A stretch of 64,000 bases of DNA from Hyaloraphidium curvatum SAG 235-1. Its lineage: Eukaryota; Fungi; Monoblepharomycota. Within the stretch, counting starts at the first letter, position 1. Every line of letters starts with the position of its first letter. Both the position numbers and the translations under genes were made by a program. Of this stretch, positions 1 through 53,525 are shown in pieces. The stretch lies in the NCBI GenBank assembly GCA_025558095.1, contig JAIVFI010000041.1:372001-436000 (forward strand), read 5' to 3'. Below the pieces are notes generated by a model. It ran no database searches. It worked only from the letters and a program-made list of their open reading frames with translations, and was not told the DNA's origin.

Positions 1-2300
1 CGGCGATTGAGCATCTGCTGCTTCATGAAGTACTCCAGGTTCTTGTGGTCCGTGAAGACGTCGACTTTATGCGGGCTACCCTCGAGGTATCGCCGCCACG
101 CCTTGAACGCGTCGACAACTGCGAGTAGCTCCTTGTCGTAGATCGGGTAGTTGATCTCCGCCGGCTGGAACTTCCGGGAATGAAACGCCACGGGATGCAT
201 AAGCCCGTCGTTGGGGGCGGGCTGCGACAGCACGGCTCCGAGGGCGAAGTCGGAAGCATCTGCCTCAACTGTGTACGGAACGGCTGGATCGGCGTTACGC
301 AGGAACGGAGCCGAAGTGAAAGCGGATTTGAGCGCATCGAAGGCTGCGCGAGCTTCCGGCGTGAAACGGAACGGATCGCCCGGCTTGAGCTTAGTGAGGT
401 CCGTGAGCGGAAGTGTGATCTGCGCGTAGTCCTTGATGAAGCAGCGGTAGAAGTTGGCAAAGCCGAGGAAGCTTTGGAGCTGGCGAAGGGTCGCAGGCTC
501 GGGCCATGAGGTGATGGACTCGACCTTGGAGGGGTCCATGATGACCTTGCCGTCGCCCACGATGAACCCGGCGTACTCGACGGTCGTAACATCGAACGAA
601 CACTTGGAGAGCTTCGCGTACAGGTGGTTGTCCCGGAGGCGCTGCAGAACCTGGCGCACATGCCCCGCGTGATCGGCTTCGTTCTCTGAGAAGATCAAGA
701 TGTCGTCGAGGTAGATCGCGACGAAGATGTCGAGTACGTCATGGAAGATGCTGTGCATGAAGCGCTGGAAGATGGCCGGCGCATTCATGAGGCCCATGGG
801 CATGACGAGGTACTCGAACTGGCCGTAGCGGGTGCGGAAAGCCGTCTTCCACTCGTCTCCTTCGCGGACGCGAATCTGACGGTAGGCTTCGCGGAGATCC
901 AGCTTGGTGAAGATCTTGGCACGGGAGAGGCGGTCCAGAAGGTCGGAAATGAGCGGGATCGGGTAGCGGTCTCGCTTCGTGATCCGGTTGAGACCGCGGT
1001 AATCCTCGCAGACGCGAAGCCCGCCGTCCTTCTTCTTTGCAAAGATGACTGGAACCCCGCTCGGAGAATCCGAAGGGCGGAGACGCCCCGATGCGGAAAG
1101 CTCTTCGATGTGCTTCCGGAGTGCCTCGGATTCGACTTCGGAGAGGCCGTGGAGACGTCCAGAAGGAGGGACTGCCCCTTCTTCGAGTTCGATTGCGCAA
1201 TCGAAACCGGGACGATGCGGCGGCAGTGACGATGCAGGCTTGTCCGGGTCGAAGACGTCCGCGAAGTCGGCGTACTGCGATGGGACCGTGGGCTCGGCGG
1301 CGGCCGCGCTTGCAGCGCGCGCGGCGGGGTCGGAGACCATGGCGACGAAGATCTGTGCGTCCTTGCGCTCGCGACGCATCTCGGCGACAAACTGGCGCGC
1401 CGAGAGATTAGCGATCTTCACCTTAGGCGGCGGAGGCGGAGGTACTTCCGGAGGCGCGCCCCGACCGGTCCCATCGGCCGGGGTTGGCCTCGGCGGTTGT
1501 TCGTCGACCCCGCGGCCCAAGGGGACGGCCTGCGGAGGTCTGCCTGCGTCGCCCGATCCCATGGAAGCCGAAAAAGAAGCCGTGTGTGGGTATTCGGACT
1601 CCGTGATGTCCTCGAGGATGGTCCGGTCGCTGGCCTGGCTGGAGGCGGGGTCAGCAGCTGGGAGACATCCACCGGCAGAGACGGATACGTCCACCGGGGC
1701 CGCCCGGCTGGCGCCTTCAGCCGGGCTTGTCTTTGGCGGTTCCTGATCCGCCGCCGGAGCCTTAGGCGCGCTCAACGGCGGGGAAACTCCCTGTGCGAAC
1801 GGGCGAGGGATCCGCAGGGATCGACGGGACCAATCGAGCGCCGCGTTCACGAACTCGAGGTACGAGAGTCCGAGAACGACCGGAATCGACGCGCTGATGA
1901 TGTTGAAGCTGACTCCGACGGTAATGCCATCGGCTGTCAGTGCGACGGGCTCCGTCTCCTGGGTGACGTCGCCCGACGAAATAGGCCGCCCGTCCACCAC
2001 GTCGAGCCCGAAAGGCGTGGAGCGCTGCAAGCACGAGTATCCAACGCAGCGCGCGAAAGCCTCGTCCATGAAGCAGGCGTCGGCGCCGGAGTCCACGAGT
2101 GCGTCCACGATCCGAAGCCGGCCGTCCGGAAGCACGATGCGCACGGGAATGACGAAGGAAGGAACCGGGTCGGACCGGAGCAGAGGAAATGGCGGCCGCC
2201 CGGAAGACGCCGCCAAGCAAGGGGCACGGGAAAACTGAAGACTTGTATTGGCATCGCCAGCGTCGGAGGTGCCCCGGAATCCGAGCTGGCGTTTCAAAAA
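1..2300 (-). CDS. pol: Gypsy Pol (aspartic protease, RT, RNase H), in -1 frame relative to gag, runs off window
   Basis: Manual translation: VDALVDSGADACFMD (~2110-2065), AIYLDDILIFS (~720-690), EADASDFALGAVLSQ (~265-225), NYPIYDKELLAVV, FTDHKNLEYF. Absent from the ORF track because it has no stop in the window. Confidence 0.93.
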
Positions 2301-3487
2301 GACGACGATGCAGACTTGGCGGGGCAAAAGGCCTTGACGTGACCGGGCTGACCACAGTAAATGCAGAGCCCCTCGCGAAGGCGGCGCTGGCGCTCCTCCG
2401 GCGTCAGCTTGGCGCGCGACCCTGAGGACGCCGAGCCTGAAGCCCCGCCCGGCTGGCCAGATGCAGACGCGGAGCCCAGCACCATCGGCACGGGGCCGGA
2501 AGCACTTGCGGAAGGAGCTGCCGGAGAGACATGCGATCCGATGGGCACCGACTGCATCGCTCCGGGGTAGGGATACCCAGAGGTGGGCCGGTCGCGGCTC
2601 CGAGCTTTGCGCAGCGCAGCTTGCTGCTCGGAGAGGCGAACTTGAGCAGCAAATGCGATCTTCTTCGCTTCCTGGTACGTGCTGGGCTTCGAATGCTGGC
2701 CCATCTGGTTCACGATCTCCGCGGAGAGGCCAGCCAGGAACATATCCATGAACGTGGCATCACTGTAGCCCTCGACATCCGGCTTCAAGCTTTCAAATTC
2801 GACTGCGTATTCGGCCAGATGCCCGGGCTTCTGGACGAGTGCATGGAGCGCATTGACGGCGGAAGTGTGTCGAAGTGGCATCTGAAAGGTAGAGAGAAAC
2901 TCCTCGCGAAGCGAGATCCACGAGGGCGCAATCGTCCCGGAGCTGCTCTGCTGGGCAGCAAACCAGCGGAGCGCATCGCCCTTGAGAAGCAGACTGAAGA
3001 ACGCGATCTTTTGGGCGTCCGAGGCAAGCTCCGGCTTGAGCTCGAGCGCGTTGTCGACCTGCATCATGAAGTAACGGGTGCGTGCGTGATCGGTCCCGTC
3101 GAACTTGTCCGGGGTAGGCACGTTGATCGGTTTCGCGGTTGGGGCAGCAGCGGCGTGCTGGGGCAGGAACCCCATGCGCGCGACAGAGCCGACAAACGCG
3201 TCCGTGAGCGCAGCGGCGGACACCGAAATCGGAGCAGACAGAGGAGCGTGCTGCGCGACGTGGGTTGCTTGGGAAGCGCGGTAGGTGGCGACTTGGGCAC
3301 GGATCGGGAGCGCGATGAACTCGGGCTGAGCGTCGCCGAGGGCGTCCAAGAAGCTGACGAAAGCAGCACGCTCCTGCGGCTCGAGGGTATCAAGGAAAAC
3401 CCTTTCGCGCTCGATAAGGACTTCGACGGGAGTCTGGGGGTCCGGGGTCGCGGAGAGGAGATCGCGGAGAGCGTCGGCGCCAGCCAT
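2294..3487 (-). CDS. gag: Gypsy Gag with zinc knuckle
   Basis: PDKFDG...LLKGDALRWF retrotransposon-gag motifs; CIYCGQPGHVKAFC. Confidence 0.93.
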   Translation of the reverse strand: MAGADALRDLLSATPDPQTPVEVLIERERVFLDTLEPQERAAFVSFLDALGDAQPEFIALPIRAQVATYRASQATHVAQHAPLSAPISVSAAALTDAFVGSVARMGFLPQHAAAAPTAKPINVPTPDKFDGTDHARTRYFMMQVDNALELKPELASDAQKIAFFSLLLKGDALRWFAAQQSSSGTIAPSWISLREEFLSTFQMPLRHTSAVNALHALVQKPGHLAEYAVEFESLKPDVEGYSDATFMDMFLAGLSAEIVNQMGQHSKPSTYQEAKKIAFAAQVRLSEQQAALRKARSRDRPTSGYPYPGAMQSVPIGSHVSPAAPSASASGPVPMVLGSASASGQPGGASGSASSGSRAKLTPEERQRRLREGLCIYCGQPGHVKAFCPAKSASSSF

Positions 3488-3684: not shown

Positions 3685-3816
3685 CTGCCTGTCACCTATG
3701 GTTTGGCCAAGACGATCGCCGTGACGCTGCTGACATTGGTGGTCGGGTGCTGGAGCATCTTGCGCGGCTTCGGAGTGTACGTGACCTTGCAGACGTATTG
3801 CCCGGCGCCGGCATAG
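3685..3816 (+). pseudogene. C-terminal end of a 7TM GRL-like family gene interrupted by the Gypsy element
   Basis: LPVTYGLAKTIAVTLLTLVVGCWSILRGFGVYVTLQTYCPAPA* aligns with the C-termini of the ORFs ending at 15746, 47257 and 51374. Confidence 0.8.
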
Positions 3817-3901: not shown

Positions 3902-5793
3902 CTATCGCGTGCGAGACACCAGCGAATCCAAAGCGCATTCGATCGAGTCGGGCGTGTGGGCCAGCATCGCTGCAGGGGTTGCGACAAGGAGGTCAAAGAG
4001 TGCCTCGGGATCCTCCGCTTCGAACAGCTGTCCGGTCCCGTGCTGCGCGGTCCGCATCCAAAGAATCCTCCCGGCCGGGTACAGGCGATGCCGCGAAGGG
4101 GCGGGCCTGCGCTCAGGCCCGAATGCCGCCTCCTCCACGGCCGACCGCGTTCTGCAGAACCACGTCGCATGCTCGTCGAGCTCCGACCCGCCAGTTCCCG
4201 GCACTGACATGGCATCGTCCCGCGCAAGGGCCTCATCAGCGCACCCGAGGTCATGCACGGCGTTGATGAGCCGTTCTGCGTCCATGACGGTCGCCGCCGA
4301 AAGCCTCGAGATCAGGTCGTGGTCCGTGACGAAGCTGGTCACGGTGCCCCTCAGTTCCCCGGACACGCCGAGCGAGACCACAGCAGGTGGGCCGAAAGCC
4401 ACCACGCGGACGTCCGTGTCGATCTCGGGGGCGAGCAGGGCGCCCACGAGCGTGGCGATCGCCGCGCCGAGAGAGTGCCCTACCAGGACGATACGGAAGC
4501 CGGGGTTGGCATCCATCAGGGCCTGGAGGCCGATCATGAACGGCGACGACGGCCGCGTGACGAGCTGGGCCACGGCGAGGAAGAACCCGTGCGCGTACCC
4601 TCCTCGGAAAGGCGCGCTGTCGGCCGCAAAGTCGCACAGCAGGTCCGTGATCCCCGCGCTCCCGCGGACGACAATCGCTATGAGCTTGTTGGGCGTGTTG
4701 CGGACAAAGTAGATGCTGGGGTAGTAGGTGCCCAGGCCGAGCTGGCCGGCAATGCCGAGAACGATCAATGTGGCGGTCGACGCCATGATCCGAGAGTTGG
4801 GTCCGAGGCGGCCCTGGCTGGCGAGGAATACGTGCGAGTGGCGACGATAAAGACGCCTTGGATCGGGGAGAAAGGTATTGGCGTCCAACGTCTGCCTCGT
4901 CGTGTTGCTCGGGCGAGGCAAAGGGGGCAGAATCCCGACCGCCCGCAGCAGGAAGCCGTAGAGGCGTCCGGCCACCAAAGGCACTCTCCCATAAGTGCCC
5001 ATCGTAACGCGAGCAAGTCGACGTAGCAAATGCACTTGGAAACCGACGTCCGCGGGGTCGGTGGAGTCCAGGAGCTCGATAAAGTCGGCCGGCAGCAGCG
5101 CCGGGCACTGGGTGATTCGGAGCTCGCGAAGCGTCGGTCTGCCCCTGATCAGGAAGGGTAAACTGGCTGTTCGAGAAGTTGAGGAGCGATCAAACACCTG
5201 CGAAGCCAGTCCTCCTCGGTCCGTCTGACGATCGCCATCCACGCCCGATACCGCCTGAAGGTCCGCAGCCAGCCCGATATTCCTCGGCAGTCCTCCAGCG
5301 CGACTTCGTTCTGCAGAAAGAGCCGGATGATGTCCTCGGCGATGGCGGCGGTGTACATCTGCGCGTCGAGCTCTTGGTCGGGAGACAGCGGGAGGCAGGC
5401 GCGGGCGTCCGAGAACAGGCGCAGCAGGGCATCGAACGATCCTCGAATTGGAAATGAAAGCATTCGCTCCATAACGTCGATGGCGTGACGGAGGGCGGTG
5501 ACGCACGCGAGACCGAGCGGGAACCAGGCCAGAGCTGTCTCCCAAAGGTCGAGGCACGTCCGCCCTCCGGCGAAAGGGAGGGAAACGAATCCTAGAGCAA
5601 CCTTCTTGAAGCACAGGAGGGACACCCGTGCCGCGGAAAGGAGGGCGGAAAGCAGAGGAAGCCAGGAACCGTCCCCGCCCCTGGCCGAGGCGGCGCGGGA
5701 GCGGCGGGCGTCCTCGCGTCCCGTGTCGGTCGATTCGCGGGCGGCCCATTCAGGGAAGTCGCACTCCTCGAGTGACAATTGAGGGAGTGACAT
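3902..5793 (-). CDS. Class 3 lipase-domain protein (multi-exon)
   Basis: VVRGS, AHGFF, GHSLGAAIA, FGPP, DLISRL and C-terminal His; exon boundaries approximate. Confidence 0.85.
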
Positions 5794-15745: not shown

Positions 15746-17342
15746 TCAGACCGCCGGGCAAAAGACCTGCACCGTCACGAACAGTCCCAGGTCCCTGAAC
15801 ACGCTCCACAGCCCTATTGCGACGGTGAAGGCGGTCACGAGAACCGTCCGCACGAGGCCCAAGCTCACAGGGACCCCGAGGATGCGCCCGCGGTACCGCT
15901 CGATCTCGGCGAAACTTTCCAGGACGCCGTCGTGCCGCGCGAGCTGCGCCGAAAGGTCCAGGTGGCGCTCCCCGCGCCGCTCCGAAGACAATGCGGCTTC
16001 GCATGCGAGCTGCCGCAGCCGCAGCCGGGCGGCGCCGTACAACCCCGCCACGGTTTCGAGCACCCCGTTCCGCCCCGTGGTTCCGAGCACGCCGAACATG
16101 GTCCAAGAGAAGTTGCCCAGTACGGGTATCGGGAACATCCACGCGGGGAGGCACGAGCCCGTGCCGATTGTCAGGGACATGGCGGCAAGGAGCACGGGGA
16201 TCTGAACGTAGATGGAGAACCTGCCGATGTCGAAGGGATGGTCGGCCAGCATGCGCCATTGGTAGGAGAGGCGGTTGTGCAGGCGGGTGTAGAGGAAAGA
16301 GGGCGGCGTCTCCAACGAATGTGCTTCGCGGGCTTCGAGGGCGGCCTCGTAGTGCCCTACCAGCTGGCGCAGGGCGATGGTCATGGCACGGTGAAGCAGC
16401 CGCCGCTCAAGGGATAGGAAGGGTAGCATGTCGACGACGAAGGGGCGCGACGCGAAGGCGACGAAGTTGGCGGCGATGGAGAGGACTGCGGAGGTCGAGG
16501 TTCGCGGATGGTTAGCACAGCCAACACGACAACGGAGCCACCCACGTGTCAAGCATCCCAACAGGATGCCCCACCACCGCGTCCAGAGCGTTCCAGCAAA
16601 GATCACCAAGGCAGTGTAGGCTTGCAGGAAGGGCGTCGCCCAAAACAAGAGCGTGCCATACACGATGTCGAGCACAACATCCATCCGGCCCGCGACGGCA
16701 GCGAGGCGGTGCAGGCCGGGCAGGGACAGTTGCCCCCATCCCTATCGTCGTGACGAACCGGGCTCGAGGCGCACGAGGCGGAGGTACCGCACCATTCCCG
16801 CGCAGGGGTTCGAATCGAGGTAGCCCGGAACGAGGCCAAACCGCTCCGGCCGCCGGAAGAAGGGCAGGCCTCGGCGCGAGTGGGTCGCGGAGGCAACGGC
16901 AATCCAGGTGCCCGTAAGCGCGGCGTTCCACACCACCACGCCGGTCAGACCGCCGGCGACCTGGCGGGGCCCGAAAAGAAAGCGCCCCGTCGTCCCATTC
17001 GGCGACGACCACGGCGAGCGCGAGGGCGAGGAGCTGCGTTGCCGCGATGGTCTGCCAAATCAGCGTCGTGTCGAAGCCCAGCCGGCACGCGATCCAGAAG
17101 GCCGCCCCCAGGGCCCGCGACGCCGCGCCGAGCTCGCGCACCACGCCGTCGGGCGTGAGCGGGTCCGCGGAGCGCGCACCGGCGGCGGGGTCGGGCGCCG
17201 CGTCGCCATTGTCCGGGAACGCGTCGACTATTCGGGGCTCGAAGGGCAGGAGGACGAGCTAATCCAGGGCGCTGAAGTCGCTGCGCTTCTCCGACGACGA
17301 CGACGCGGCGTCGCCGTCGTCCCGGGGTGCTGCAGCCTCCAT
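15746..17342 (-). pseudogene. 7TM GRL-like family member, disrupted (in-frame TAG at 17259-17261, several frameshifts)
   Basis: Family motifs spread over three frames: FGPRQVA, LDSNPCAGMVRY, VRHDDRDGGNCPCPAC, WTRWWGILL, GSCLPAW, GVPVSLGLVRTV..GLWSVFR..VFCP. Confidence 0.75.
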
Positions 17343-17544: not shown

Positions 17545-19368
17545 TCAGTTGCCCGTGGGGACCATCGGCGATCCCTCCGCCCTCGCCGTTACTACGTCCC
17601 AAAAGTAGGGCGCCTCCTCCTCCCCCCCATCCACGCCCGGTGAAGGTGAGGGCTGCTCCGAATGCCGGCTGCGGCTGCGCTTCCGCCGCACTTTCTTCCT
17701 CGAAGGCGACGGGGAAGGCGTCGGCGAGGGCGGGACGATGGCGTCCCATTCCGGCACCTCGGAATGGTCCGGGGTGATGGTCAGATCGGGGGTGATGTAC
17801 AGGTCCGGGGTGCCGTCGGGGAGGGTGGGGGGCGGGAGGGCGGGGTAGACGACGCCGGGGGCGCCGATCTGTGGGAGGGAGGCGGAGGGGTTGTACGGCG
17901 AAGGAGGTGCGAGAAGGGAAGCCGAGGGGGGGAGGGATTGGGAGAACTGTCCGGAAGGGGAGGACGTGGCGGGGATGTAGGCGCCGGGTTGGAGGGAGGC
18001 GGACGGGGAGTAAGGGGAGGGTGGTGCTGAGGCGGAAGGCAGGTACGGGGAGGGCTGGAGAGATGCAGATGCCTGCGGGGATGTTGCCGGGATGTAGCCC
18101 GACGGCGCGTACGGCGTCGGTTGGAGCGAGGCCGCTGCGGCAACTGGGTAGGCCGACTGTGCGGCAGGCGAGGCAGGAGGAGCGGCGTACGCCTGGGCGG
18201 CCGGAGGAGGCGCCGCCGCGTACCCTTGCGTCCCCGCGTAGGGCTGCCCGTTGGCGTACGGCTGCCCGTTCTGCGCCTGCACGACGGCCGCACTCGCTGC
18301 GCCCGCAGCAACGCCCACTGCCACAGGCGCGACGGGAAACCCCGGCTGGGGCTGTGGCTGCGGCGCCGCCTGCTGCATCTCCACGCCCTTCCCCTTGTAC
18401 CCCTTCCGCGGCTGTTCCTGCGGCTCGTACCGCGGCTTGTATCCCCCGCACCCGCAGCATCCGCAACCCCCCTTGTCCGGGCGCCAAGGGATCCCCCTGA
18501 ACAGGCCGTACTGGAACAAAATGGAGACGAGCATCATGGAGAGGCAGCCGGCCACCATGCCAATGAGCGCGGGGGTCCAGACCCAGCCGGAAAAGTCGGG
18601 GAGCTGGGGTTTGAAGAGGGAGAGGAGGGCGGTGGAGAAGCCGGAGCGGACGAAGGTGTCTTTCGGCAGGCGGGCGGTGAGCGGCCTTCGCGGGAAGAAT
18701 GGCGGGCACATACCAAGGCCCCAGAAGAACAAGAGCGACCCCGCGACCGCCGAGCACACGCGAATGATCGGCGCCCCCAGGAGCCAAATTGCGATGCCCC
18801 CAGCGACCGCCATGATGACGACCACGGCGATGGCCCAGCCCGGCGGAATGCTCGCAGACGCAAACCCCACGATCACCAACCCCGCCGCCAGCCCGCCGCC
18901 CAGCCCGAGTGCGACGAGGCCGACCTGCCACAACCAGCACAGGAAGATGCCCCCCAGCAGCGCGGCGCCGAAGGTCGTCCCGATGTAAATGGCCAACCTG
19001 TTGTCGCCGTACCCGACCCCGTTGGCCGGTTCGCACGCGTATAGGATCGTGTACGCGATGAATCCCGACACGGCGGCACCGGCGAGGAACAGCGTGGCGC
19101 GGAACACGCGGATGCCGCCGAACGCGAGCAGGAGGCCGACGCCCATGGAGACGACGGCCATGCCGATGGGGCCGGCGGCGAGGTCGCTGCCGGGCGGCAA
19201 GGTGAAAGGTGGGGGCAGTTTCTGCGCGGAAGCAGGGGGCAGCAGGAGGAAGAGGGGGAGGAAGGGGAGCAGGTCGGCCGCCGAAATGGGCACGCGACCG
19301 AACTGTGGCTGGGGCCGTGTCCGGGGCCAGGGGCGGCCCGGTATTGTCCGTGGCCACCTTAGGCCCAT
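17545..19368 (-). CDS. TMEM198/TM7SF3-like (DUF4203) membrane protein with Pro/Tyr-rich tail
   Basis: GLLLAFGGIRVFRATLFLAG and multiple Gly-rich TM helices; probably one intron. Confidence 0.7.
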   Translation of the reverse strand: MGLRWPRTIPGRPWPRTRPQPQFGRVPISAADLLPFLPLFLLLPPASAQKLPPPFTLPPGSDLAAGPIGMAVVSMGVGLLLAFGGIRVFRATLFLAGAAVSGFIAYTILYACEPANGVGYGDNRLAIYIGTTFGAALLGGIFLCWLWQVGLVALGLGGGLAAGLVIVGFASASIPPGWAIAVVVIMAVAGGIAIWLLGAPIIRVCSAVAGSLLFFWGLGMCPPFFPRRPLTARLPKDTFVRSGFSTALLSLFKPQLPDFSGWVWTPALIGMVAGCLSMMLVSILFQYGLFRGIPWRPDKGGCGCCGCGGYKPRYEPQEQPRKGYKGKGVEMQQAAPQPQPQPGFPVAPVAVGVAAGAASAAVVQAQNGQPYANGQPYAGTQGYAAAPPPAAQAYAAPPASPAAQSAYPVAAAASLQPTPYAPSGYIPATSPQASASLQPSPYLPSASAPPSPYSPSASLQPGAYIPATSSPSGQFSQSLPPSASLLAPPSPYNPSASLPQIGAPGVVYPALPPPTLPDGTPDLYITPDLTITPDHSEVPEWDAIVPPSPTPSPSPSRKKVRRKRSRSRHSEQPSPSPGVDGGEEEAPYFWDVVTARAEGSPMVPTGN

Positions 19369-44341: not shown

Positions 44342-44771
44342 GGCGGCGCCGCGCGGGGGACCGGGCCGCGGAGGGCAGGGAGAGGGGTGGAATGCGCAAC
44401 TGGAAGAGAGGAGACGGCGCAGAGAGACGCGGAGGGGCGGCTGCCGGGGTCGAGAAAACGGGAGAACGGGTTCTCAGAAGACGGTCGAGCCCGGGTTGAT
44501 TAGCGAAACGCCGAACCAACGAAGGGAAGGCACAGGCGCTGCAGCAATCTAGGCGGGACATGCTTAACATCATAGATGTAACTCTGGCCTGGTGGTACCG
44601 CGGCTCTGCCGGTGGTCCACGAAACCGATCCGCCGAGATCGCCTCAAATCTGGAAGCTCCTCGAGGAACTTCGCGGCAAGAAATCAGGTCCTCCTCCGGC
44701 GGTAATCTATGGCAAGGTCCGCCCTCCCTCTTTCGCGACCTTCTGGGAGATCCAAAAGGCACCCCTCCCGT

Positions 44772-46749
44772 TCAGGCGCCTTCTCCGCCGTCGGCCCGGC
44801 CATCCTCCTCGGAATTCTTGCGGGTCAGGATCTTGGCCAGCAGCCGGTCCGACACCATCATCGTCTCGGCAAACGCCCTCGTCAAATCGTCTACGTCCGT
44901 GTCCGATGGCGAGGCGGCCGGCTGGGGGCTCGGAGTGAGGTCGACTGCGAGCTGGACCCCCGAATCCGCGAGGAGCGCGACGATGCTGTCCATGAACGTG
45001 ACCGCTAGGTGGCACAGGGGGTGAGGGTGAGGCACGGCAAAGATGCGAGCGATGCGGCGGCGACCCACCCGCGGGGAGCACCTCGGCAAAGGCCGCCATG
45101 TACTTGAGGCCGGTACGGATGTCGCGCAGCACCATCGACGCGCCGCCGGCCCTGGCCACGGCCGCCTGGAGGGTGACCGACCTCAGGGCGCCCATGTACG
45201 ACGTCAGGTGGCAGTGCCTGAGCATGGGTTCCCGGGCGAGCAGCGCCTCCATGAGCCGGGTTGCGACGATGCCGGCTTCCAGGGCAGCGGCTAGCGGCCG
45301 CGACGAGAAGAAGGCCCCCGTAGCGGTCGCGGGGTTCCCCGCCACCCACGCAGAAACAGGGAGGGATTGGAAAGCGAGGAGCAGGGAGACCACGGATTCC
45401 GCGGCCGCCGTGCTGCCCAGGTACTCGTCCGCGCGTGCAAAAAGCGGTTCCGGGTCTCCGGCAGCGAGCGCAGATCCGATCGGCTCCGGCATCGCCCGGT
45501 GGAGCTCGGCGACGAGACGGCCCGGCAGCTCCGTGCGCCAGCGGTGGTCCGCATCGGAGGGGGAATCCAAGGCGGGATCCTGCGCGGCCAGGGCGAGGAG
45601 GTCCACCCCGTCCCGGGCGGCCCGGTCCCGGGCGCGGGCTTGGAGGCCGGTGAAGAGGTCGAAGAGGTAGATGAAGACGTATCTGCTGGCCCGCAGGCTA
45701 AAGACGGCGCCGACCAGCTTGTGGACAAGCCGCGTGCACGAGTCAAAGTCCGGATCGGCGGCGAGGAAAGGGGACGGATCCGCGACGACGCGTTCGCCCT
45801 GCGAGGCGGCGAAGAGGGCGAATGCGTGTTCCGCCGACGGCATGTCGAAGAAAATATCGTGGCAGGGCATCAGCACACGGCCGGAAAAGTAGGAGAACGG
45901 CTCCCTCTCGGCTGGCGTCGTCGAGACTGCGACAGTGTTCGCATCGGTGTGCCCCACGTCGATGGCGCAACGTATGGCCATTTCCGACGACAGCCACTCG
46001 ACGACGTCCCGCGGGGCGAAAACGCCGCCAAAGGGGATGCCGTCCGGGCCGGTGACTGGGCGGAAGATCCGGTCCAGCAGGTCTCTGGCCCTCGTGCGCA
46101 CGGCAGGGAGCTCGGTCGTGAGCCCGTACCCGATGTGGTAGCGCATGAGGAATGTCAACACCTGAACGGCCTCGAGGATCGTCATGGTCGGCGCTCCCGG
46201 CCCGTCGAATCCGTCCCGGAACAGCTGCATCGCTTGCTGGAAGTACCCCTCGACAATCTTCCACCGCTGCTCCTTCGAGATTCCCGGAGCGCTGAGAAAC
46301 GAGCCTCCGCAGGCAGCCACGACGCACATGAGCGCAGCGGGCTTGTGCGGCCCGTAGACGCGGGAGGGCGGCCTGAGGAACGCGGCCTCGAACGTCTCTC
46401 GGTGCACCGCGCCGCCGGGGGCGTGGGTGGTCTCCCAGTGTAGAGAGATGCACGCGAAAAGAAAATCTGGCTGAGCCAGGATGCCTTCGGGCCCGGGGGA
46501 CGCGTCGGAAGCCGCACGGCCCGGGCCGGCCGGACCCGGATTCCCGCGGGGCCCATCCGCGCCCGCCCGCTCCTCGCAGGGCTGCCCCAACCGAGCACAC
46601 CTGTCGCAGGGCGCCGATGGGTCGTCGGGCCACGTGCAACGTTTCTTCCTGAGCCGGCAGGTTCGGCAGGCGGGCCGGACCGGTGTCCGCGACGTCGACT
46701 GCTCCGGTCCCGCGGAATCCCGCAGAGGCGCGCCGGGCGGCGCTGCCAT
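44772..46749 (-). CDS. Zn(II)2Cys6 transcription factor with fungal TF middle domain
   Basis: CRTCRLRKKRC..PCDRCARLGQPC; VHRETF; one 3' intron. Confidence 0.9.
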
Positions 46750-47256
46750 CGTGTCTGGAGACCCTTGGCACGGGACGGACAACACCGAGAGCGGCAGAGA
46801 GAGTCCGGGCCCTATCACTGACGAAGCATTGTGTTTGGTTCGAGCTGGGTTGCCACTGCGGGCTTCTTCCGGGCGACGAATACTCCGCTACTCCGCCGAG
46901 TCCCCTGCGCAGCTTGATGCTTTGCTTGGCAACGAAGAACGCATATGGAGGAGAACAGGGGCTATTGAAGCTTTGTCGCTGCGCAACGGGGAGAGTCCTT
47001 CTACATCAGCACCGTTACCATCTCTGTCCAGCATCCAGTCTCCATTGCGTTCCATTGAAGCCGTGGCGGGGATTGATTGCGGACACTTTGGGGCCAAATC
47101 GGTCTCCGTTTCGCCCGAACGGAATCTGGCCGACGTGGCCCGGTTCAGGCGCGGACCGAGACTCCTCCACCGACCCCACCGACCTACGTTCCGACCAAGC
47201 AACCCTGGACACAGCCATGGCTTCGTGAACTCCGTCGACAGGCTTGGTCTTCCCAA

Positions 47257-48672
47257 TCACCCGGCGCACACCGTCTCGACCGTAAAGTACACCCCCGCCG
47301 CCCTGAGCACCGTCCAGAGCCCGAACGAGAGCGTCACGCACGTCACCGCCAGCGTCCTCACCACCGCCGCGTCCACCGTGAACCCCATGTACTTCTGGCG
47401 CGCCCCCTCCGTCTGCGCAAACAGCGCCAGCAGGGCGTCGTGGTCCGCCAGCGACCTCTCCACGCGGTCCGACGGCCGCCTCGAGCGGAGCACCAGCACG
47501 TCGGCGCGGGTGCGGCGGTACAGGGCCGCGACGTCCTCGATGCGGAGGTTGGCGGCGGCGATCGCCAGCAGCGAGGTGAAGTAGATCGCGAGCACGTCCA
47601 GGAAGATGAGCGGCATCCACAGCGGCACGCACCCCGCGGCCACTGCGTTCAGGAGCAGGCCGACGATGAGCGTGGAGAGGGCGCCGAGGAACTGCGCGCG
47701 CCCCTGGGAGATGTAGGCCAGCTGGGAGGGCCAGGATTCCGCGAGGCGGAAGTGCAGCTCCACGTAGGGCTCGTCGGCGGCGGCGACGGGGACGAGGTCC
47801 TCGGCCGCGGCGCGGCGGTGCCGGTCGACCATGTCCGAGAGGAGGACCACCATGGCACGGTGCTGCAGGCGGCCCGAAAGACCCAGGATGCGGACGCTCG
47901 GGGTGTTGTACGAGAAGGTGAAGTGCGACGGCAGGGTGTGCAGGAGCAGCAACGCCGCGTAGACGGCAAAGAGGAGGATGCTCCACCAGGTCGACCACAT
48001 CAGGGGGGCGAACGTCACGCACAGCGTCCAAACAGACAGGGCGTGTCCGCCGAGGAGCACTGCGCTCTGCATCGCGGCGTCGATCGGGTACATGATCCAG
48101 GAGGAGCGGACGACGGAGCTGCAGTCCCCGCACGGGCAAAGCCGGTCCGCGGGGTCGTGCCGAACGAGCGGCAACACCTGGCTTCCCTTGTCCGAGAGCA
48201 GGTCCCGCCACCGGACGAGCTGCGCAAAGGGGTTCGCGTCCAGGGACGGCACGGCGGCGACGAACTTGTGGCTCGTCCAGACACCGAGCGCGCCCAGCCA
48301 GAACACGGCCAGGAAAAAGACGGTGATGGCGACCGAAGCCGCGGCGATTTGCTTGGTGCCGAAGGCGCCCAGCCTCGCGTTGAAGACGAGGAGGGGCACC
48401 AGCATAAGGTACCACGACAACACCGAGGCCGCGAGGCGCGCACCCGAGTTCCGGGCCAGGAGCGCGAAACAGTGCGACACGTAGATGCGCGAGAACGCCA
48501 GGGGGATGGGCAGGCCGCGGAGGCCGGCCAGCAGCGAAGCTTCGTCGAGCGGCGCGGAAGCGCCGGCGTAGTCGCCGTCCTCGGGCAGCAGCGCGCGGCG
48601 CTCGGCGGGGCACAGGGACAGCGGCGGCAGAGGCTGCTTGGCGCCCGCCGCCGGCGCGCCGTCGTCCGCCAT
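47257..48672 (-). CDS. 7TM gustatory-receptor-like/DUF3537-like (7TMIC) protein, intact and intronless
   Basis: Seven hydrophobic segments; long helical loops after TM4 and TM6; HDALLALF..MGFTVD..VRTL C-terminal motif; three paralogues in window. Confidence 0.7.
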   Translation of the reverse strand: MADDGAPAAGAKQPLPPLSLCPAERRALLPEDGDYAGASAPLDEASLLAGLRGLPIPLAFSRIYVSHCFALLARNSGARLAASVLSWYLMLVPLLVFNARLGAFGTKQIAAASVAITVFFLAVFWLGALGVWTSHKFVAAVPSLDANPFAQLVRWRDLLSDKGSQVLPLVRHDPADRLCPCGDCSSVVRSSWIMYPIDAAMQSAVLLGGHALSVWTLCVTFAPLMWSTWWSILLFAVYAALLLLHTLPSHFTFSYNTPSVRILGLSGRLQHRAMVVLLSDMVDRHRRAAAEDLVPVAAADEPYVELHFRLAESWPSQLAYISQGRAQFLGALSTLIVGLLLNAVAAGCVPLWMPLIFLDVLAIYFTSLLAIAAANLRIEDVAALYRRTRADVLVLRSRRPSDRVERSLADHDALLALFAQTEGARQKYMGFTVDAAVVRTLAVTCVTLSFGLWTVLRAAGVYFTVETVCAG

Positions 48673-48923
48673 CCGGGCGTGTGTTCTGGGGGAAGGTTTG
48701 TCTCCGGGCGAGATCTGCGCTTGGCTCAAGGCTTGGCTACTGTCTCCCGCCCAGTGGACCTTGCCAAGATCAATGCCATTCGATCTCCCTCGTCGCAAGT
48801 GCACCGGGTCAAGTGAAGGCACCGCACGTCCAACGCCGGCGGAAGCGTCAGGCCACGACCCAGACCAGATCGACCGGAGACCTGTCGCCCGCCCCGTGCC
48901 TCAATCCCCTCCCACCACACACA

Positions 48924-49609
48924 TCACCGCCTTTCCTCGTCCCCGATGTAGTACGGCACCACATCTTCCGCAGCGATCCCGAACCTCCCGTCGTCTACCA
49001 AGTGCGAATTGGTCGCCTCGGGCACGACGGGCGGGGCCTTGCCCGCGTGCTCGGCCTCGCGCCACCGCAAGGCGCAGAGGCACCACCTGTCGCCGGGCTT
49101 GAGGCCGGGGAAGCGGAAGTCCGGGCGGGGGGTGATGAGCTGTTTCCGGGAAGGTTTCGGGTGGCCGATCCGAGGTCGTCGGGGGTAGGCAGCAAGCGCA
49201 ACGCCGCGGGCAGGACGGGACTACGAGTCAGGGCCGGCAGGGCAGTAGCATCGCGGGCATGCAAACACGCACGTCGTTGCCGCGGGATCGCGTGAACTCG
49301 AGGAACTCCTTGGTCACCTCGGCGCAGACTGCTCGCCGGCGGGATGGCAGAACGGGGTCAGCTTGCCACGCTTCCCATGGGGGCCCGCGTCCGAGACCGA
49401 CCGACATGAGTACCGGAATCCTCGGGACCCGTCACGCACCGCCCGTCGCGGTAGAACCCGGTCAGCGGTGCGAGCGAGCAGATCTCCAGCGGGCGGCCGA
49501 GCAGGTTGCGGGGGGACGCCTGCGCGGGCATCGCGGGGAGCAGCAGCAGCAGCGCCGCGAGGAGGGCGGTGAGGGCGGAAAGAACAGAAGGCGGGGGCGG
49601 GCGGGGCAT
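48924..49609 (-). CDS. DUF2237-family protein with signal peptide (2 introns)
   Basis: NLLGRPLEICS..TGFYRDG.C.TGPEDSGTH|VCAEVT.EFL.F..SRGND|L.TPRP...FPGLKPGDRWCLCA.RW.EA. Confidence 0.85.
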
Positions 49610-49701
49610 GGGGGCCGCGGTGAGGCCTTCCCGCGGTGTGCGGAGGATCGATCGGAGCGCGGTGGCTGCGGGCTGCGGGCGGGGGAATCAGCTTGCATCC
49701 C

Positions 49702-51374
49702 ATGGAGCCGCCCACGGAGCCGGCCTCCGCCGCGCCCCCGCCGGCGCTGCTGACGCGCGAAGAATGGCTGGCGTGTTTTCCGGCCGCGGCGCCGGCGACC
49801 GGCGGGCTCGGCACCCTCCCGGGTCCCCCCGACCCGGCCGCGGCACTGCGGGACGCGGCCCCGCTCACGCAGTCGTCGATGCTGCGTGCCCTCGCCCCTT
49901 GGCCTTCGATGCGTGCCGTGCTATCCGCCCAGTTCGCGACGGGCGCGCTGCACTTCGCGATAATGCCGGCACAGCTGTTGACGCATTTCTTCAACCTGGC
50001 CATAATGGGCGCCATGTTCTGGTTTCTGGAGCAGGCAAATTTCGCTGGCTTCGGCCGCTCCAATGCCGTGGTGGGCGTCACCGCCGGGGTCGTCGTCAAC
50101 GCGTCAGGGTTGCTGTCCTATCTCGTTTTCCTGGTCTCGCGCGAAGCCAGAATGGAGTATCTGAGCTGGTTTGAAGTGAAATCGCTCGATTACAACTATT
50201 GCGCCCAGGCTGTGAGGTGGAGCGAACTCTGCTCGGGCGTTTTGAAGCATGGGGAAATGGAGGACGGTGGCTGCCTGGGCTCCTTCTCCAAAGGCCGCCT
50301 GGTGGCTCACGACCCCGACGACAAGCTTTGCCCGTGCCCGGACGAACGTTGCGCCGGTCAGCTCCTTTGGCAGGCCGCTGTGGCGGCCGCGTCGACGGCC
50401 CTTGTCGTCACGACGGCGGCCGTTACCTCGATGGGGGTGTGCATGGTTTGGACTCCTTTCGTGACCCTGCGCTTGCAGTTTTGGTCGACCTGGTGGAGCG
50501 TTCTTTTGGCCGTCGTCTTTCGTGAGCTCCTGTGTAGCCGCGCTCCTTCCGCCGCACCCCCACTCATGAAGCCCCACGCAGTAGTGTCCATGGTCACCTA
50601 CTTTGTGACGTCCTTAGCGCACAACCACATAACGCTGCCCCTGCTCCGCCTCACCCTCCGGATCCACCACCGGGCGATGCACCTGGCGCTGTCGGACCTC
50701 GTCGACGGCTACCGCGCCGTGCTGGAGGACTCCGCCGCGGTCCATCGCGGTTGCCTGGAGACCGCATCCGCGTACGCTTCCCTCTATGCTCGCATAAAGA
50801 TCGAATGGCAGACCCGCCTCAGGGAGCTCCTCCGCGGTCGGGGGTTCGCGGCGACCGCGGCGGCGTCCCTGGTCGCAGCAGGAGCCATCAACATCGTGAG
50901 CGCGCGCCAACCCACGGCAGGCGATCGCCCCTTTCTGACCGCCCGATGACACCGCAGATCGGCGGCTCCTGCCTCCCCGCGTACATCCCCATCTGGCTCC
51001 TCCTCGGCTTCGTGTACGTCTTCGCCACAGACATGGCCGGCGTAGCCGTCAGCAACGCCCAGATCTCGGACATCACCGCGCTCTTCCGCGACGCCCGCGC
51101 GGCGCTGGGCGAGCTCTCCATGCTCGCCACGCTCCCCGGCACCTCCCCCGCCCCGCAGGCCGCAATCATAACCTCGATCGGCGAACACCAACGGCTGCTG
51201 GGCTCGTTCGCGGACGCGGACAGGTACAAGGTCCGTCTTTTCGGCTTCGCGATTGACTATTCGGGGGTCAGGGCGGTGCTGGCGACGCTCCTGACGATCG
51301 CGCTGGGGTTGTGGACCGTCCTTAGGAGCGCGGGGGTGTTTCTGACCCTGGAGACGGTGTGCCCGTCTCCATGA
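49702..51374 (+). CDS. 7TM GRL-like (7TMIC) protein, with introns
   Basis: HDPDDKLCPCPDERC, WSTWWSVLL, RIHHRAM, GSCLP, AVSN, HQRLL..F..LFGFAID..GLWTVLR..ETVCP. Confidence 0.7.
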
Positions 51375-51489: not shown

Positions 51490-53525
51490 TCACCCCTCCC
51501 CGTCCACCATCGTCCAGCTCCCCTCCATGTCCGCCAGCGACCCCACCGTGCTGCTCGACAGCGTCCGCCCCCTGATCCTCCCCTCCTCGAGCGCCTCGGC
51601 GAGCGTGGGCGCGAACTCGGGGCTCCCGGGGAGCGACGCCACCGACGCCGCGAGGTCCCGCTCCGGGGGGCCGAACGACGAGAGGAGGCGGGAGAGGAGC
51701 GCGCCCATCCTCGACGTCCGCGGGGCGGGAACCTCCGCCGTCGGGAGCGGCAGCTGTCCTGCGTCCTCGTCGCCCGTGTCCACGGGGGCGAACGCGGGGG
51801 GCAGCTCCAGCCCGTCCTCCATGGCCTCGAGCACCTCCCCCGCCACCCTCTCGAGCTCCTCCACCCCCGGCTCCCCCTCCCCCTCCGCAGCCGGAACGCG
51901 CATCTCCGGCCTGGGCGCCGGGCTGACCAGCACCCCCTCCCCCTCGTCCTCCTCCAGCCCCACGGCCTTCCTTCGTGCCACAGTGGCCGCCAGCGCCTCC
52001 CCGGCCCTCTCCAGTATAAAGTCCGCCGCCCGCTCCGCCCCGCCTTCCTCCCCCATCCGCCGACCCATTTCCCTGCACCGCCCGGCCATGCCCCCGTCGG
52101 CCAAGCACGCTCTCACGGCCTCGAGCAGCTCCCTGCCCCCCGCCCTCCGGACCCATTTGCCCACCCCCCTGGCCTCGCACTCGCGCGCCCACAGGTACTG
52201 GTCCCCGAAGAACGGCACCACGACCGAAGGTACCCCCGCGAGCAGCGCGGCCGACAGCGTGCCGGAACCGCCGTGGTGCACGGCGCACGAGAGGTGCGGG
52301 AACAGCGCGCCGTGCGGCACCGAGGGGACCACGTGGAACGCCGGGGGCAGGGAGAGCAGCGGGTCCGCGGGGGCGGGGGGGTACGCCGCGCCCGGGGGGG
52401 AGCCCGGGGGTGGTGGTGTGGGGGTCGGGTGGGCCCAGCCTCGGGCGAGGACGACGCGCCAGTTGCCCGCCTGGGCGGCGTCGACGACCGCGCGGAGGAG
52501 GGCGGGGGGGTCGGGGGGCACGATGGAGCCGAAGCCGACGTAGATGATGGGATTTGAAGGGGTGGCGGGGGGTTGGAGGAAGGCGAGGAGGTCGGGGGGG
52601 AGGGAGTCGGTGGATGGGGCGGAGGGGATGGTGAAGGCGCCGCTGCGGGGAAACGTGGAGGAGGGACGATCAGATAAACGGAAACAATGAGCACGCCTGA
52701 CAGGCCCCACCACACATCGATCTCGTCGCCCCAGTCGGGCGGCTTGGGCAGCAGGCTCGGCGAGTAGCCGTAAACGGTGGGGATCCCCTTGGCCGGGTAG
52801 CGCCACCCTGCCCCCCTCGCGACCTCCCTCCCCATCGCCCGCTGCTCCCTCGCGTGCATCGAGTTCGTCGGCAGCCCCCTCGCCCTCCTGAAGGCCGAGA
52901 TCAGCGCGCGGGCGCCGAACTGCAGCGCCTCCTCGGCGGCCACGTGGCTAGCGAGGTTGTACGCGCGGCCGAGGTCCCGCGGGGGCACGAGGAACGGGTG
53001 CGGCACGTGAGCTGTGCGGTGCCACGGCATGAAGAAGGCGTGGGCGAGGGGCAGCCTCATTGCGTCGGCCAGATGGGTGGAGCACAGCAGCGAGGGCGCG
53101 GCGACCAGCAGGTCCGGTGCGGCCGCCAGCGCCGCGGCATGTGCCGAGTCGAACAGCTCGGCGAGAAAGGCGAGCAGCGCGGGCGCGGCGGCGGGGAGGT
53201 GCAGCAGCCCGCGGGACAGCGTGGCCATCAGCGCGTGCGGCGAGCCCGAGAGGGGGAGGAAGGCGACGCCGTGCGCCTCGACGAAGGCGCGGTGGGCTTC
53301 GTGGCTCGCCAAAATCACTTGATATGTGGTCGACGGGTCCTTAAATCGGTCGTCCGGGGAGGCCCCCGCAGCGGACGCCGGAGACGGCTGCCCGGCAGTC
53401 CGGCCCCTCTCCGCGAACGCCAGCGCCAGCGCCACGAACGGCTGCACGTCGCCGCGCGACCCGATCGTCAGCAGCAGCACCCGCACCGCTCGGCCGCCGC
53501 CCGGGGGGGCTGGGGGCGGGGCCAT
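51490..53525 (-). CDS. Sterol 3-beta-glucosyltransferase-like GT1 enzyme
   Basis: IGSRGDVQP, YGYSP..PKPPDW, IYVGFGS, VHHGGSGT, PFFGDQ. Confidence 0.9.

Follow-up and report, generated by a model that had tools for sequence, protein, structure and literature searches.

What kind of protein is encoded by a gene family that occurs four times within 64 kb of a fungal genome and resembles, in its membrane layout, the chemoreceptors of insects? This question is raised by a stretch of 64,000 nucleotides of Hyaloraphidium curvatum SAG 235-1 (Monoblepharomycota; contig JAIVFI010000041.1 of assembly GCA_025558095.1, positions 372,001 to 436,000), hereafter the window, which belongs to a 31.9-Mb assembly of 55 contigs with about 65% GC. 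An earlier note, written from the letters of the window alone, had proposed here an expanded family of “gustatory-receptor-like” membrane proteins. Our analysis indicates that, by their sequences, the four loci are differently preserved copies of a very large and fast-diverging H. curvatum family. Structure modelling makes it very probable that this family has the fold of the 7TMIC superfamily, which takes in the insect odorant receptors (OR) and gustatory receptors (GR), the animal gustatory receptor-like proteins (GRL) and the plant DUF3537 proteins (PMC7746228, PMC9998090). The best overall explanation, towards which we lean slightly, is a repertoire of 7TMIC-fold proteins with a putative channel and chemosensory role.

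A profile hidden Markov model (HMM) was built from 23 full-length paralogues (alignment A1) and searched against the window translated in all six frames. It matched four loci only, with nothing else at E < 0.1:

47257..48672, minus strand: gene 1, an intact single-exon coding sequence of 471 residues with seven transmembrane (TM) segments; open frame, stop codon at 47257-47259.
49702-51374, plus strand: gene 2, intact, with three exons; found by the profile HMM, both introns confirmed by RNA contigs.
15746..17342, minus strand: gene 3, a family pseudogene with an in-frame TAG and three frame changes.
3685..3816, plus strand: a relic, the last 41 codons of a copy (TM7, C-terminal tail and stop); HMM match at 3685-3807.

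Seven TM helices are predicted in the family, the hydropathy segments and the helices of the AlphaFold2 model being in agreement. Family-averaged hydropathy places the segments, in the numbering of gene 1, near residues 78-97, 108-133, 196-220, 225-247, 325-347, 350-373 and 435-458. For topology, Lys and Arg were counted within 15 residues of the helix ends and averaged over the 23 paralogues: 12.3 of them lie on the side of the N-terminus and loops L2-3, L4-5 and L6-7, as against 0.9 on the other side. By the positive-inside rule, this asymmetry predicts that the N-terminus is inside and the C-terminus outside, which is the reverse of G-protein-coupled receptors (GPCRs). The inner loops L2-3, L4-5 and L6-7 have mean lengths of 68, 76 and 62 residues, and the outer loops L1-2, L3-4 and L5-6 of 4, 6 and 5 residues. 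Intracellular loops longer than the extracellular ones are among the features by which Benton and Himmel 2023 (PMC9998090) define membership in 7TMIC; another is an anchor domain formed by long TM4, TM5 and TM6 together with a TM7 split into 7a and 7b, and both of our models fit it. In the gene 1 model, DSSP assigns helices 229-291, 302-346 and 352-397, then 402-419 and a separate 435-458; in the second model these are 262-321, 331-384, 389-439, then 448-468 and 484-507. A small hairpin is formed at the GF motif ahead of the last helix, and the long TM4-5 and TM6-7 loops are helical.

The models themselves are confident. AlphaFold2 run on alignment A1 (gene 1) gave a pLDDT of 90.7 and a pTM of 0.87, and a replicate for a member from a second organism, 22-26% identical, gave 89.5 and 0.88; both models represent monomers. 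When the first model was compared with the PDB using Foldseek, the top 17 rows were all insect gustatory or odorant receptors, with probabilities of 0.77-1.0, E values from 0.0035 and TM-scores of only 0.21-0.44; no match was obtained in this search at E <= 0.001. The top 10 rows for the second model were also all insect GR/OR, and an independent all-against-all structure aligner placed insect OR/GR chains on top for both models. Rows of similar Z for unrelated proteins (syntaxin, STAT, designed bundles) covered 100-180 residues of the cytoplasmic bundle only, and the syntaxin-type four-helix bundles were confined to residues about 246-430. GPCRs were represented in the structure searches by GPR55 only, at Foldseek rank 48 (E 0.93, probability 0.07). 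In the ESM Atlas, the first model matched a plant DUF3537 protein with TM-scores of 0.60/0.64 over 363 residues, the nematode GUR-4 carrying 7tm_7 (0.53/0.60) and unnamed clusters from cnidarians and arthropods (0.50-0.67), while every bacterial row was below 0.3 by the query-normalised score. A language-model atlas search showed little recognition and scored a DUF3537-labelled set at 0.90, a weak lead that we do not count as evidence.

What the earlier note had read about architecture is thus largely borne out. Hydropathy and the AlphaFold2 model reproduce its seven hydrophobic segments, its short loops (TM3-4, TM5-6), its long helical ones (TM4-5, TM6-7) and its GF turn; the Lys/Arg count agrees with its non-GPCR topology; the proposed match to the insect OR/GR fold heads the lists of two models in Foldseek and in the second aligner; and the likeness of layout to DUF3537 is recovered in the ESM Atlas match to the first model. 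None of the outcomes by which the note would have been refuted was obtained.

The size of the family was approached from several sides. With gene 1 as the query, at least 95 matches were found in the genome (the best 90 of 678 first-look candidates were scored), and with a distant member at least 83 (the best 83 of 707 candidates); about 40 loci of the latter search, by hand count, are absent from the gene 1 list, and the distinct scored loci number at least about 125. The copies are scattered over nearly all contigs, with at least 11 family loci in the 472 kb of JAIVFI010000041.1. A HMMER search of 1.84 billion cluster representatives returned 306 proteins at E <= 0.001 (224 of them at E <= 1e-10), which are mutually less than 50% identical, and nine of the ten proteins sampled across this list are H. 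curvatum “hypothetical proteins”. Roughly estimated, the family would number several hundred genes and account for some 2% of the gene set.

These genes are mostly intronless and encode proteins of 470-540 residues, the 23 paralogues being 27-58% identical with their motifs kept. For young paralogue pairs (dS 0.5-0.7), the NG86 method gives dN/dS of 0.28-0.46, figures which are rough in so GC-biased a genome; they indicate purifying, fairly relaxed selection. Judging by homologues in public assemblies, the family extends beyond the H. curvatum genome: the Logan assembly SRR26194948 has members on three contigs (one measured contig has 54% GC versus 65% in the window), and one member occurs on a scaffold of the metagenome ENA ERZ28593542. 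Between the members from either source and any H. curvatum copy, identity does not exceed 32%, and the symplekin of the SRR26194948 organism is 42-54% identical to that of H. curvatum.

How conservation is distributed along the protein was analysed by column entropy and invariance in 92 diverse members, in gene 1 residue numbering. Two elements of gene 1 stand out:

47299..47370, minus strand: last membrane helix, residues 435-458 (equivalent of TM7b), the most conserved helix and a helix of the AlphaFold2 model.
48121..48159, minus strand: codons of the H-x6-C-x-C-x2-C loop (His172, Cys179, Cys181, Cys184), marked by invariance.

The mean column entropy is 1.66 for the last helix versus 2.8-3.1 for TM1-TM6, and the most variable helices are TM1-TM4. 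Residues R439, T444, T447, G451, R457 and G460 are 73-98% conserved, with Thr444, Thr447 and Gly451 on one face of the last helix, and the conserved RL..RA, EPY..LH and W314 are situated in cytoplasmic helices. Insect receptors, too, conserve TM7 best among their helices and vary most in TM1-TM4. The layout observed in the alignment fits a pore-lining last helix, a cytoplasmic bundle holding the subunits together and a variable outer pocket, all of them features of insect receptors, and is not proof of them.

The four residues of the His/Cys motif are the only ones, besides the start Met, that are invariant both in the 92 members and in the 23 paralogues. The motif lies in the TM2-3 loop, on the Lys/Arg-rich and hence predicted cytoplasmic side, after a conserved A..RW..L helix. 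Most likely, this loop is a family-specific addition serving as a zinc site or as an acylation/redox site, the former being suggested by a His-Cys3 set that faces the reducing side. Two further cysteines, Cys348 in the TM5-6 loop (100% conserved) and Cys469 in the C-terminal tail (98%), probably form a disulfide, which is plausible because both are on the predicted outside and each is in or just after one of two short strands of the model (348-350 and 462-464).

Are the copies in the window live genes? Transcript evidence was taken from contigs of one public run, which are RNA-like by their spliced joints and adapter tails and which speak for the presence of a transcript, not for its expression level. 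Genes 1 and 2 are transcribed, and gene 2 is spliced. At gene 1, RNA contigs of 100% identity span 47000-47957 and 48075-48640 with no joint within the coding sequence, which the HMM matches at 47260-48639 (minus strand, E 3e-162). Gene 2 is divided into three exons, since the RNA contigs show two GT..AG joints:

49702..50521, plus strand: exon 1, N-terminus to TM4; HMM match; an RNA contig joins 50521 to 50582, with a GTGAGC donor at 50522.
50522-50581, plus strand: intron 1, 60 nt; GT..AG joint in an RNA contig, GTGAGC donor.
50582..50895, plus strand: exon 2, TM4-5 loop and TM5; both flanking GT..AG joints in one RNA contig.
50896-50957, plus strand: intron 2, 62 nt; GTGAGC donor at 50896, CTGAC branch-like site, CAG acceptor ending at 50957, joint in an RNA contig.
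50958..51374, plus strand: exon 3, GSCLP loop, TM6, TM6-7 loop, TM7 and stop; HMM and BLASTP matches; an RNA contig continues to 51500.

The HMM matches gene 2 at 49726-50904 and 50961-51365 (plus strand), exons 1 and 2 corresponding to profile positions 5-359 and exon 3 to positions 358-484 (E 5e-44); there is one frame change, across which the profile match is uninterrupted. RNA contigs part from the window sequence at 50308, 50337, 50865 and 49538 with loose ends of 214-255 letters, which may stem from chimeric contigs, from transcripts of paralogues or from alternative gene 2 forms.

Gene 3 is dead, because its family match (15752-17243, minus strand) is split over four frames without room for introns and is joined by an in-frame TAG. 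The HMM pieces 16995-17243, 16763-16978, 16666-16770 and 15752-16678 correspond to profile positions 24-104, 112-175, 177-212 and 209-485, and the TAG (17260-17262) stands at the Trp position of an N-terminal FSPAEW-type motif. The possibility of a live intron-containing gene was rejected, since the pieces abut or overlap and leave no spare bases. The His/Cys motif and the last helix are still legible in this copy. The relic is matched at 3685-3807 (plus strand, E 8e-15) over profile positions 445-485 only, and the HMM scan of the window found no family-like sequence upstream of it. A Ty3-type gag open reading frame (ORF) is located about 200 bp from the relic, at 2294-3487 on the minus strand (Retrotrans_gag E 1.3e-12, Ty3_capsid E 3.9e-11). 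Insertion of a retrotransposon, or an associated deletion, may have removed the rest of this copy.

In pairwise BLASTP comparisons, gene 1 matches the other long copies with E values of 7e-25, 3e-17 and 9e-24 (the last one for exon 3 of gene 2) at 29-32% identity, a similarity which, on these scores, is far beyond chance. None of the four loci is a recent duplicate: exon 1 of gene 2 has no paralogue at E <= 1e-25, and the nearest paralogue of gene 3 shows 36-52% identity. All three long copies carry the motifs WxxWWxxLL and RxxHRAM, only the two intact ones have AxxN, and the C-terminal GLW..LR..G...T....C block is found in all four loci.

The earlier note had therefore counted the loci correctly, the profile HMM finding exactly these four, and its picture of the copies needs correction in that 49702-51374 has two introns and 15746-17342 is broken. 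Its list of shared motifs stands for WxxWWxxLL, RxxHRAM, AxxN and the C-terminal block; GxCxPxW/Y is literal in copies 2 and 3, while gene 1 has GCVPLW, one residue shorter. The large repertoire postulated in the note is supported by the genome searches and the 306 representatives, and its birth-and-death evolution is supported by the occurrence of a pseudogene and a relic alongside the two expressed genes.

What may such proteins do? According to the explanation that we prefer, they would assemble into tetramers via a cytoplasmic four-helix “anchor” (extensions of TM4, TM5 and TM6 plus the TM7a helix) around a central pore lined by the Thr444/Thr447/Gly451 face of the conserved last helix. 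The variable outer helices TM1-TM4 would provide a ligand pocket differing between paralogues, and the family as a whole would be a set of ligand-gated channels with which the fungus samples chemicals of its environment. The channel and chemosensory roles are suggested by the fold and the conservation pattern; we consider the chances that the proteins are ion channels to be about even, and a chemosensory role is put forward with somewhat more reserve. Equally tentative is the fuller proposal that ligand-gated channels of the 7TMIC fold underwent an independent, massive expansion in this planktonic, non-motile fungus, each channel being equipped with a cytoplasmic His-Cys3 metal/redox module.

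Several observations weigh against this explanation. Pfam gave no match for the window copies and none for the 23 members at E <= 10, and a profile search of PDB sequences yielded nothing relevant, its one match being a chance regulator at E 0.05. The family lacks TYhhhhhQF, the TM7 motif of GR, the consensus of the last helix being VRT..VT..T.A.GLW..LR. Arg457, which is nearly invariant, is located near the outer end of this helix, where an Arg is not known to be typical of the cation-selective pores of OR/GR. Finally, H. curvatum is to our knowledge non-flagellate, so chemotaxis cannot be the use of the repertoire. Because TYhhhhhQF is missing, we file the family under the fold-defined superfamily only and not under GR/GRL proper (7tm_7, PF08395), for which there is neither a profile match nor the TM7 motif; nor is it assigned to DUF3537 (PF12056), to which Pfam gives no match. 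Searching the genome with PF12056 and PF08395 gave no match, the controls of the same search being equally silent.

No function has been shown for any non-animal 7TMIC (PMC9998090), and the same fold might serve another purpose, for example recognition of non-self or parasites, or some membrane function that does not depend on gating by external chemicals. Such a purpose would be in keeping with the tiny extracellular surface, whose outer loops have 4-6 residues, and with the invariant His/Cys loop in the cytoplasm, which points to intracellular regulation. H. curvatum is, moreover, non-motile as far as we know. On the other side, insect ORs bind their ligands within the helix bundle and not on the loops, and the combination of a conserved last helix and anchor, variable outer helices and birth-and-death dynamics is chemoreceptor-like; we regard this alternative as unlikely, and as the most serious of those considered. 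The insect-receptor likeness might also be due to a convergent helical arrangement, or to a bias of AlphaFold2 towards a fold it has seen, in which case the family would be a novel seven-TM one. The low TM-scores and the silent profile searches would suit this, and the agreement of two models and two structure aligners on the insect receptors would not; we consider it improbable.

Two further alternatives were rejected. Seven TM helices and a large family recall the PTH11-like receptors of some fungi, and one could think of fungal GPCR-like receptors with the N-terminus outside and G-protein signalling. Here, the positive-inside count places the N-terminus inside, Pfam at E <= 10 finds no GPCR among the 23 members, the structure searches put no GPCR near the head of their lists, and GPCRs have no such long helical bundle in the cytoplasm; this is the least credible of all the alternatives. 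Very improbable, too, is that the family travels with a mobile element or descends from one, or that it consists of non-functional ORFs. Dispersal of the copies over nearly all contigs and the relic beside a Ty3-type gag speak for the mobile element, and the many long spurious ORFs of GC-rich genomes for noise. Such an origin is contradicted by the motifs conserved in paralogues of 27-58% identity, by dN/dS below 0.5, by spliced transcripts and confident models, and by members in a second organism at 54% GC.

The surroundings of the four loci may be described briefly. Between the divergently oriented genes 1 and 2, there is a separate spliced transcript at 48743-49625 (minus strand), with introns 49140-49272 and 49329-49401 defined by an RNA contig; its ORF 49358-49609 (minus strand) has a hydrophobic signal-like start and a bacterial-type DUF2237 match (E 1.2e-10). 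Directly downstream of gene 1, the long ORF 44707-46818 (minus strand) shows a weak match to the fungal Zn2Cys6 cluster (E 9e-4, below the Pfam cut-off), and one RNA contig extends 2.4 kb from the 3' part of gene 1 toward this ORF, which is not proof of a single transcript. Other neighbours are a class-3 lipase (3902-5749), a TM7S3/TM198-like membrane protein whose long tail is rich in Pro (17545-19368) and a UDP-glycosyltransferase-like protein (51490-52806), all on the minus strand.

As large chemoreceptor repertoires, the 7TMIC superfamily is known only in animals; outside them, one to a dozen genes per genome have been reported (PMC7746228, PMC9998090), the plant DUF3537 family having 4-12 members per genome (PMC7746228). 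The fungal candidates in the literature searched are single GRLs, Spizellomyces punctatus and S. palustris GRL1 (Benton et al. 2020, PMC7746228). The structural screen of 2023 reported no 7TMIC in Fungi (PMC9998090), and for Himmel et al. “Fungi” means Chytridiomycota and Blastocladiomycota only. Our literature search found no link between Hyaloraphidium and gustatory or odorant receptors, nor any report of a family of several hundred with this fold in organisms other than animals. If our explanation is true, this would be the first non-animal 7TMIC case with the genomic signature of sensory receptors (hundreds of genes, birth and death, purifying selection), a chemosensory repertoire of insect-like size without neurons or flagella, and large 7TMIC repertoires would have arisen outside animals too. 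The simple, mostly intronless genes would make the role of non-animal 7TMICs testable, and a regulatory input that the literature searched does not mention for this superfamily is suggested by the invariant His/Cys loop.

Comparison with the known systems shows where the family stands. To the insect OR/GR (Orco, MhOR5, AaegOR10, BmGr9, Gr43a, Gr64a; Pfam 7tm_6, 7tm_7), there is no detectable sequence similarity, the identity in structural alignments being 7-15%. The family differs from them by the absence of TYhhhhhQF, by extremely short outer loops, by a cytoplasmic TM2-3 loop of 60-70 residues with the invariant His/Cys motif, by a conserved outer Cys pair, by mostly intronless genes and by its occurrence in a fungus, not an animal. 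PHTF and Drosophila Grl (Benton and Himmel 2023, PMC9998090) represent different lineages and small families, with no His/Cys loop described in that literature. The plant DUF3537 proteins (PF12056), whose function is not established, are non-animal as well and are like our family in overall predicted fold (TM-scores of 0.60/0.64), whereas Pfam gives no match between the two, and several hundred members here contrast with the 4-12 of plants. The chytrid GRLs share with our family the provenance from early-diverging fungi, the GRL features of secondary structure and a poorly conserved TM7 motif. As described, they differ from it: the chytrid GRLs are single genes found by GRL sequence similarity, whereas the Hyaloraphidium family lies beyond the reach of sequence, has hundreds of members and belongs to Monoblepharidomycetes.

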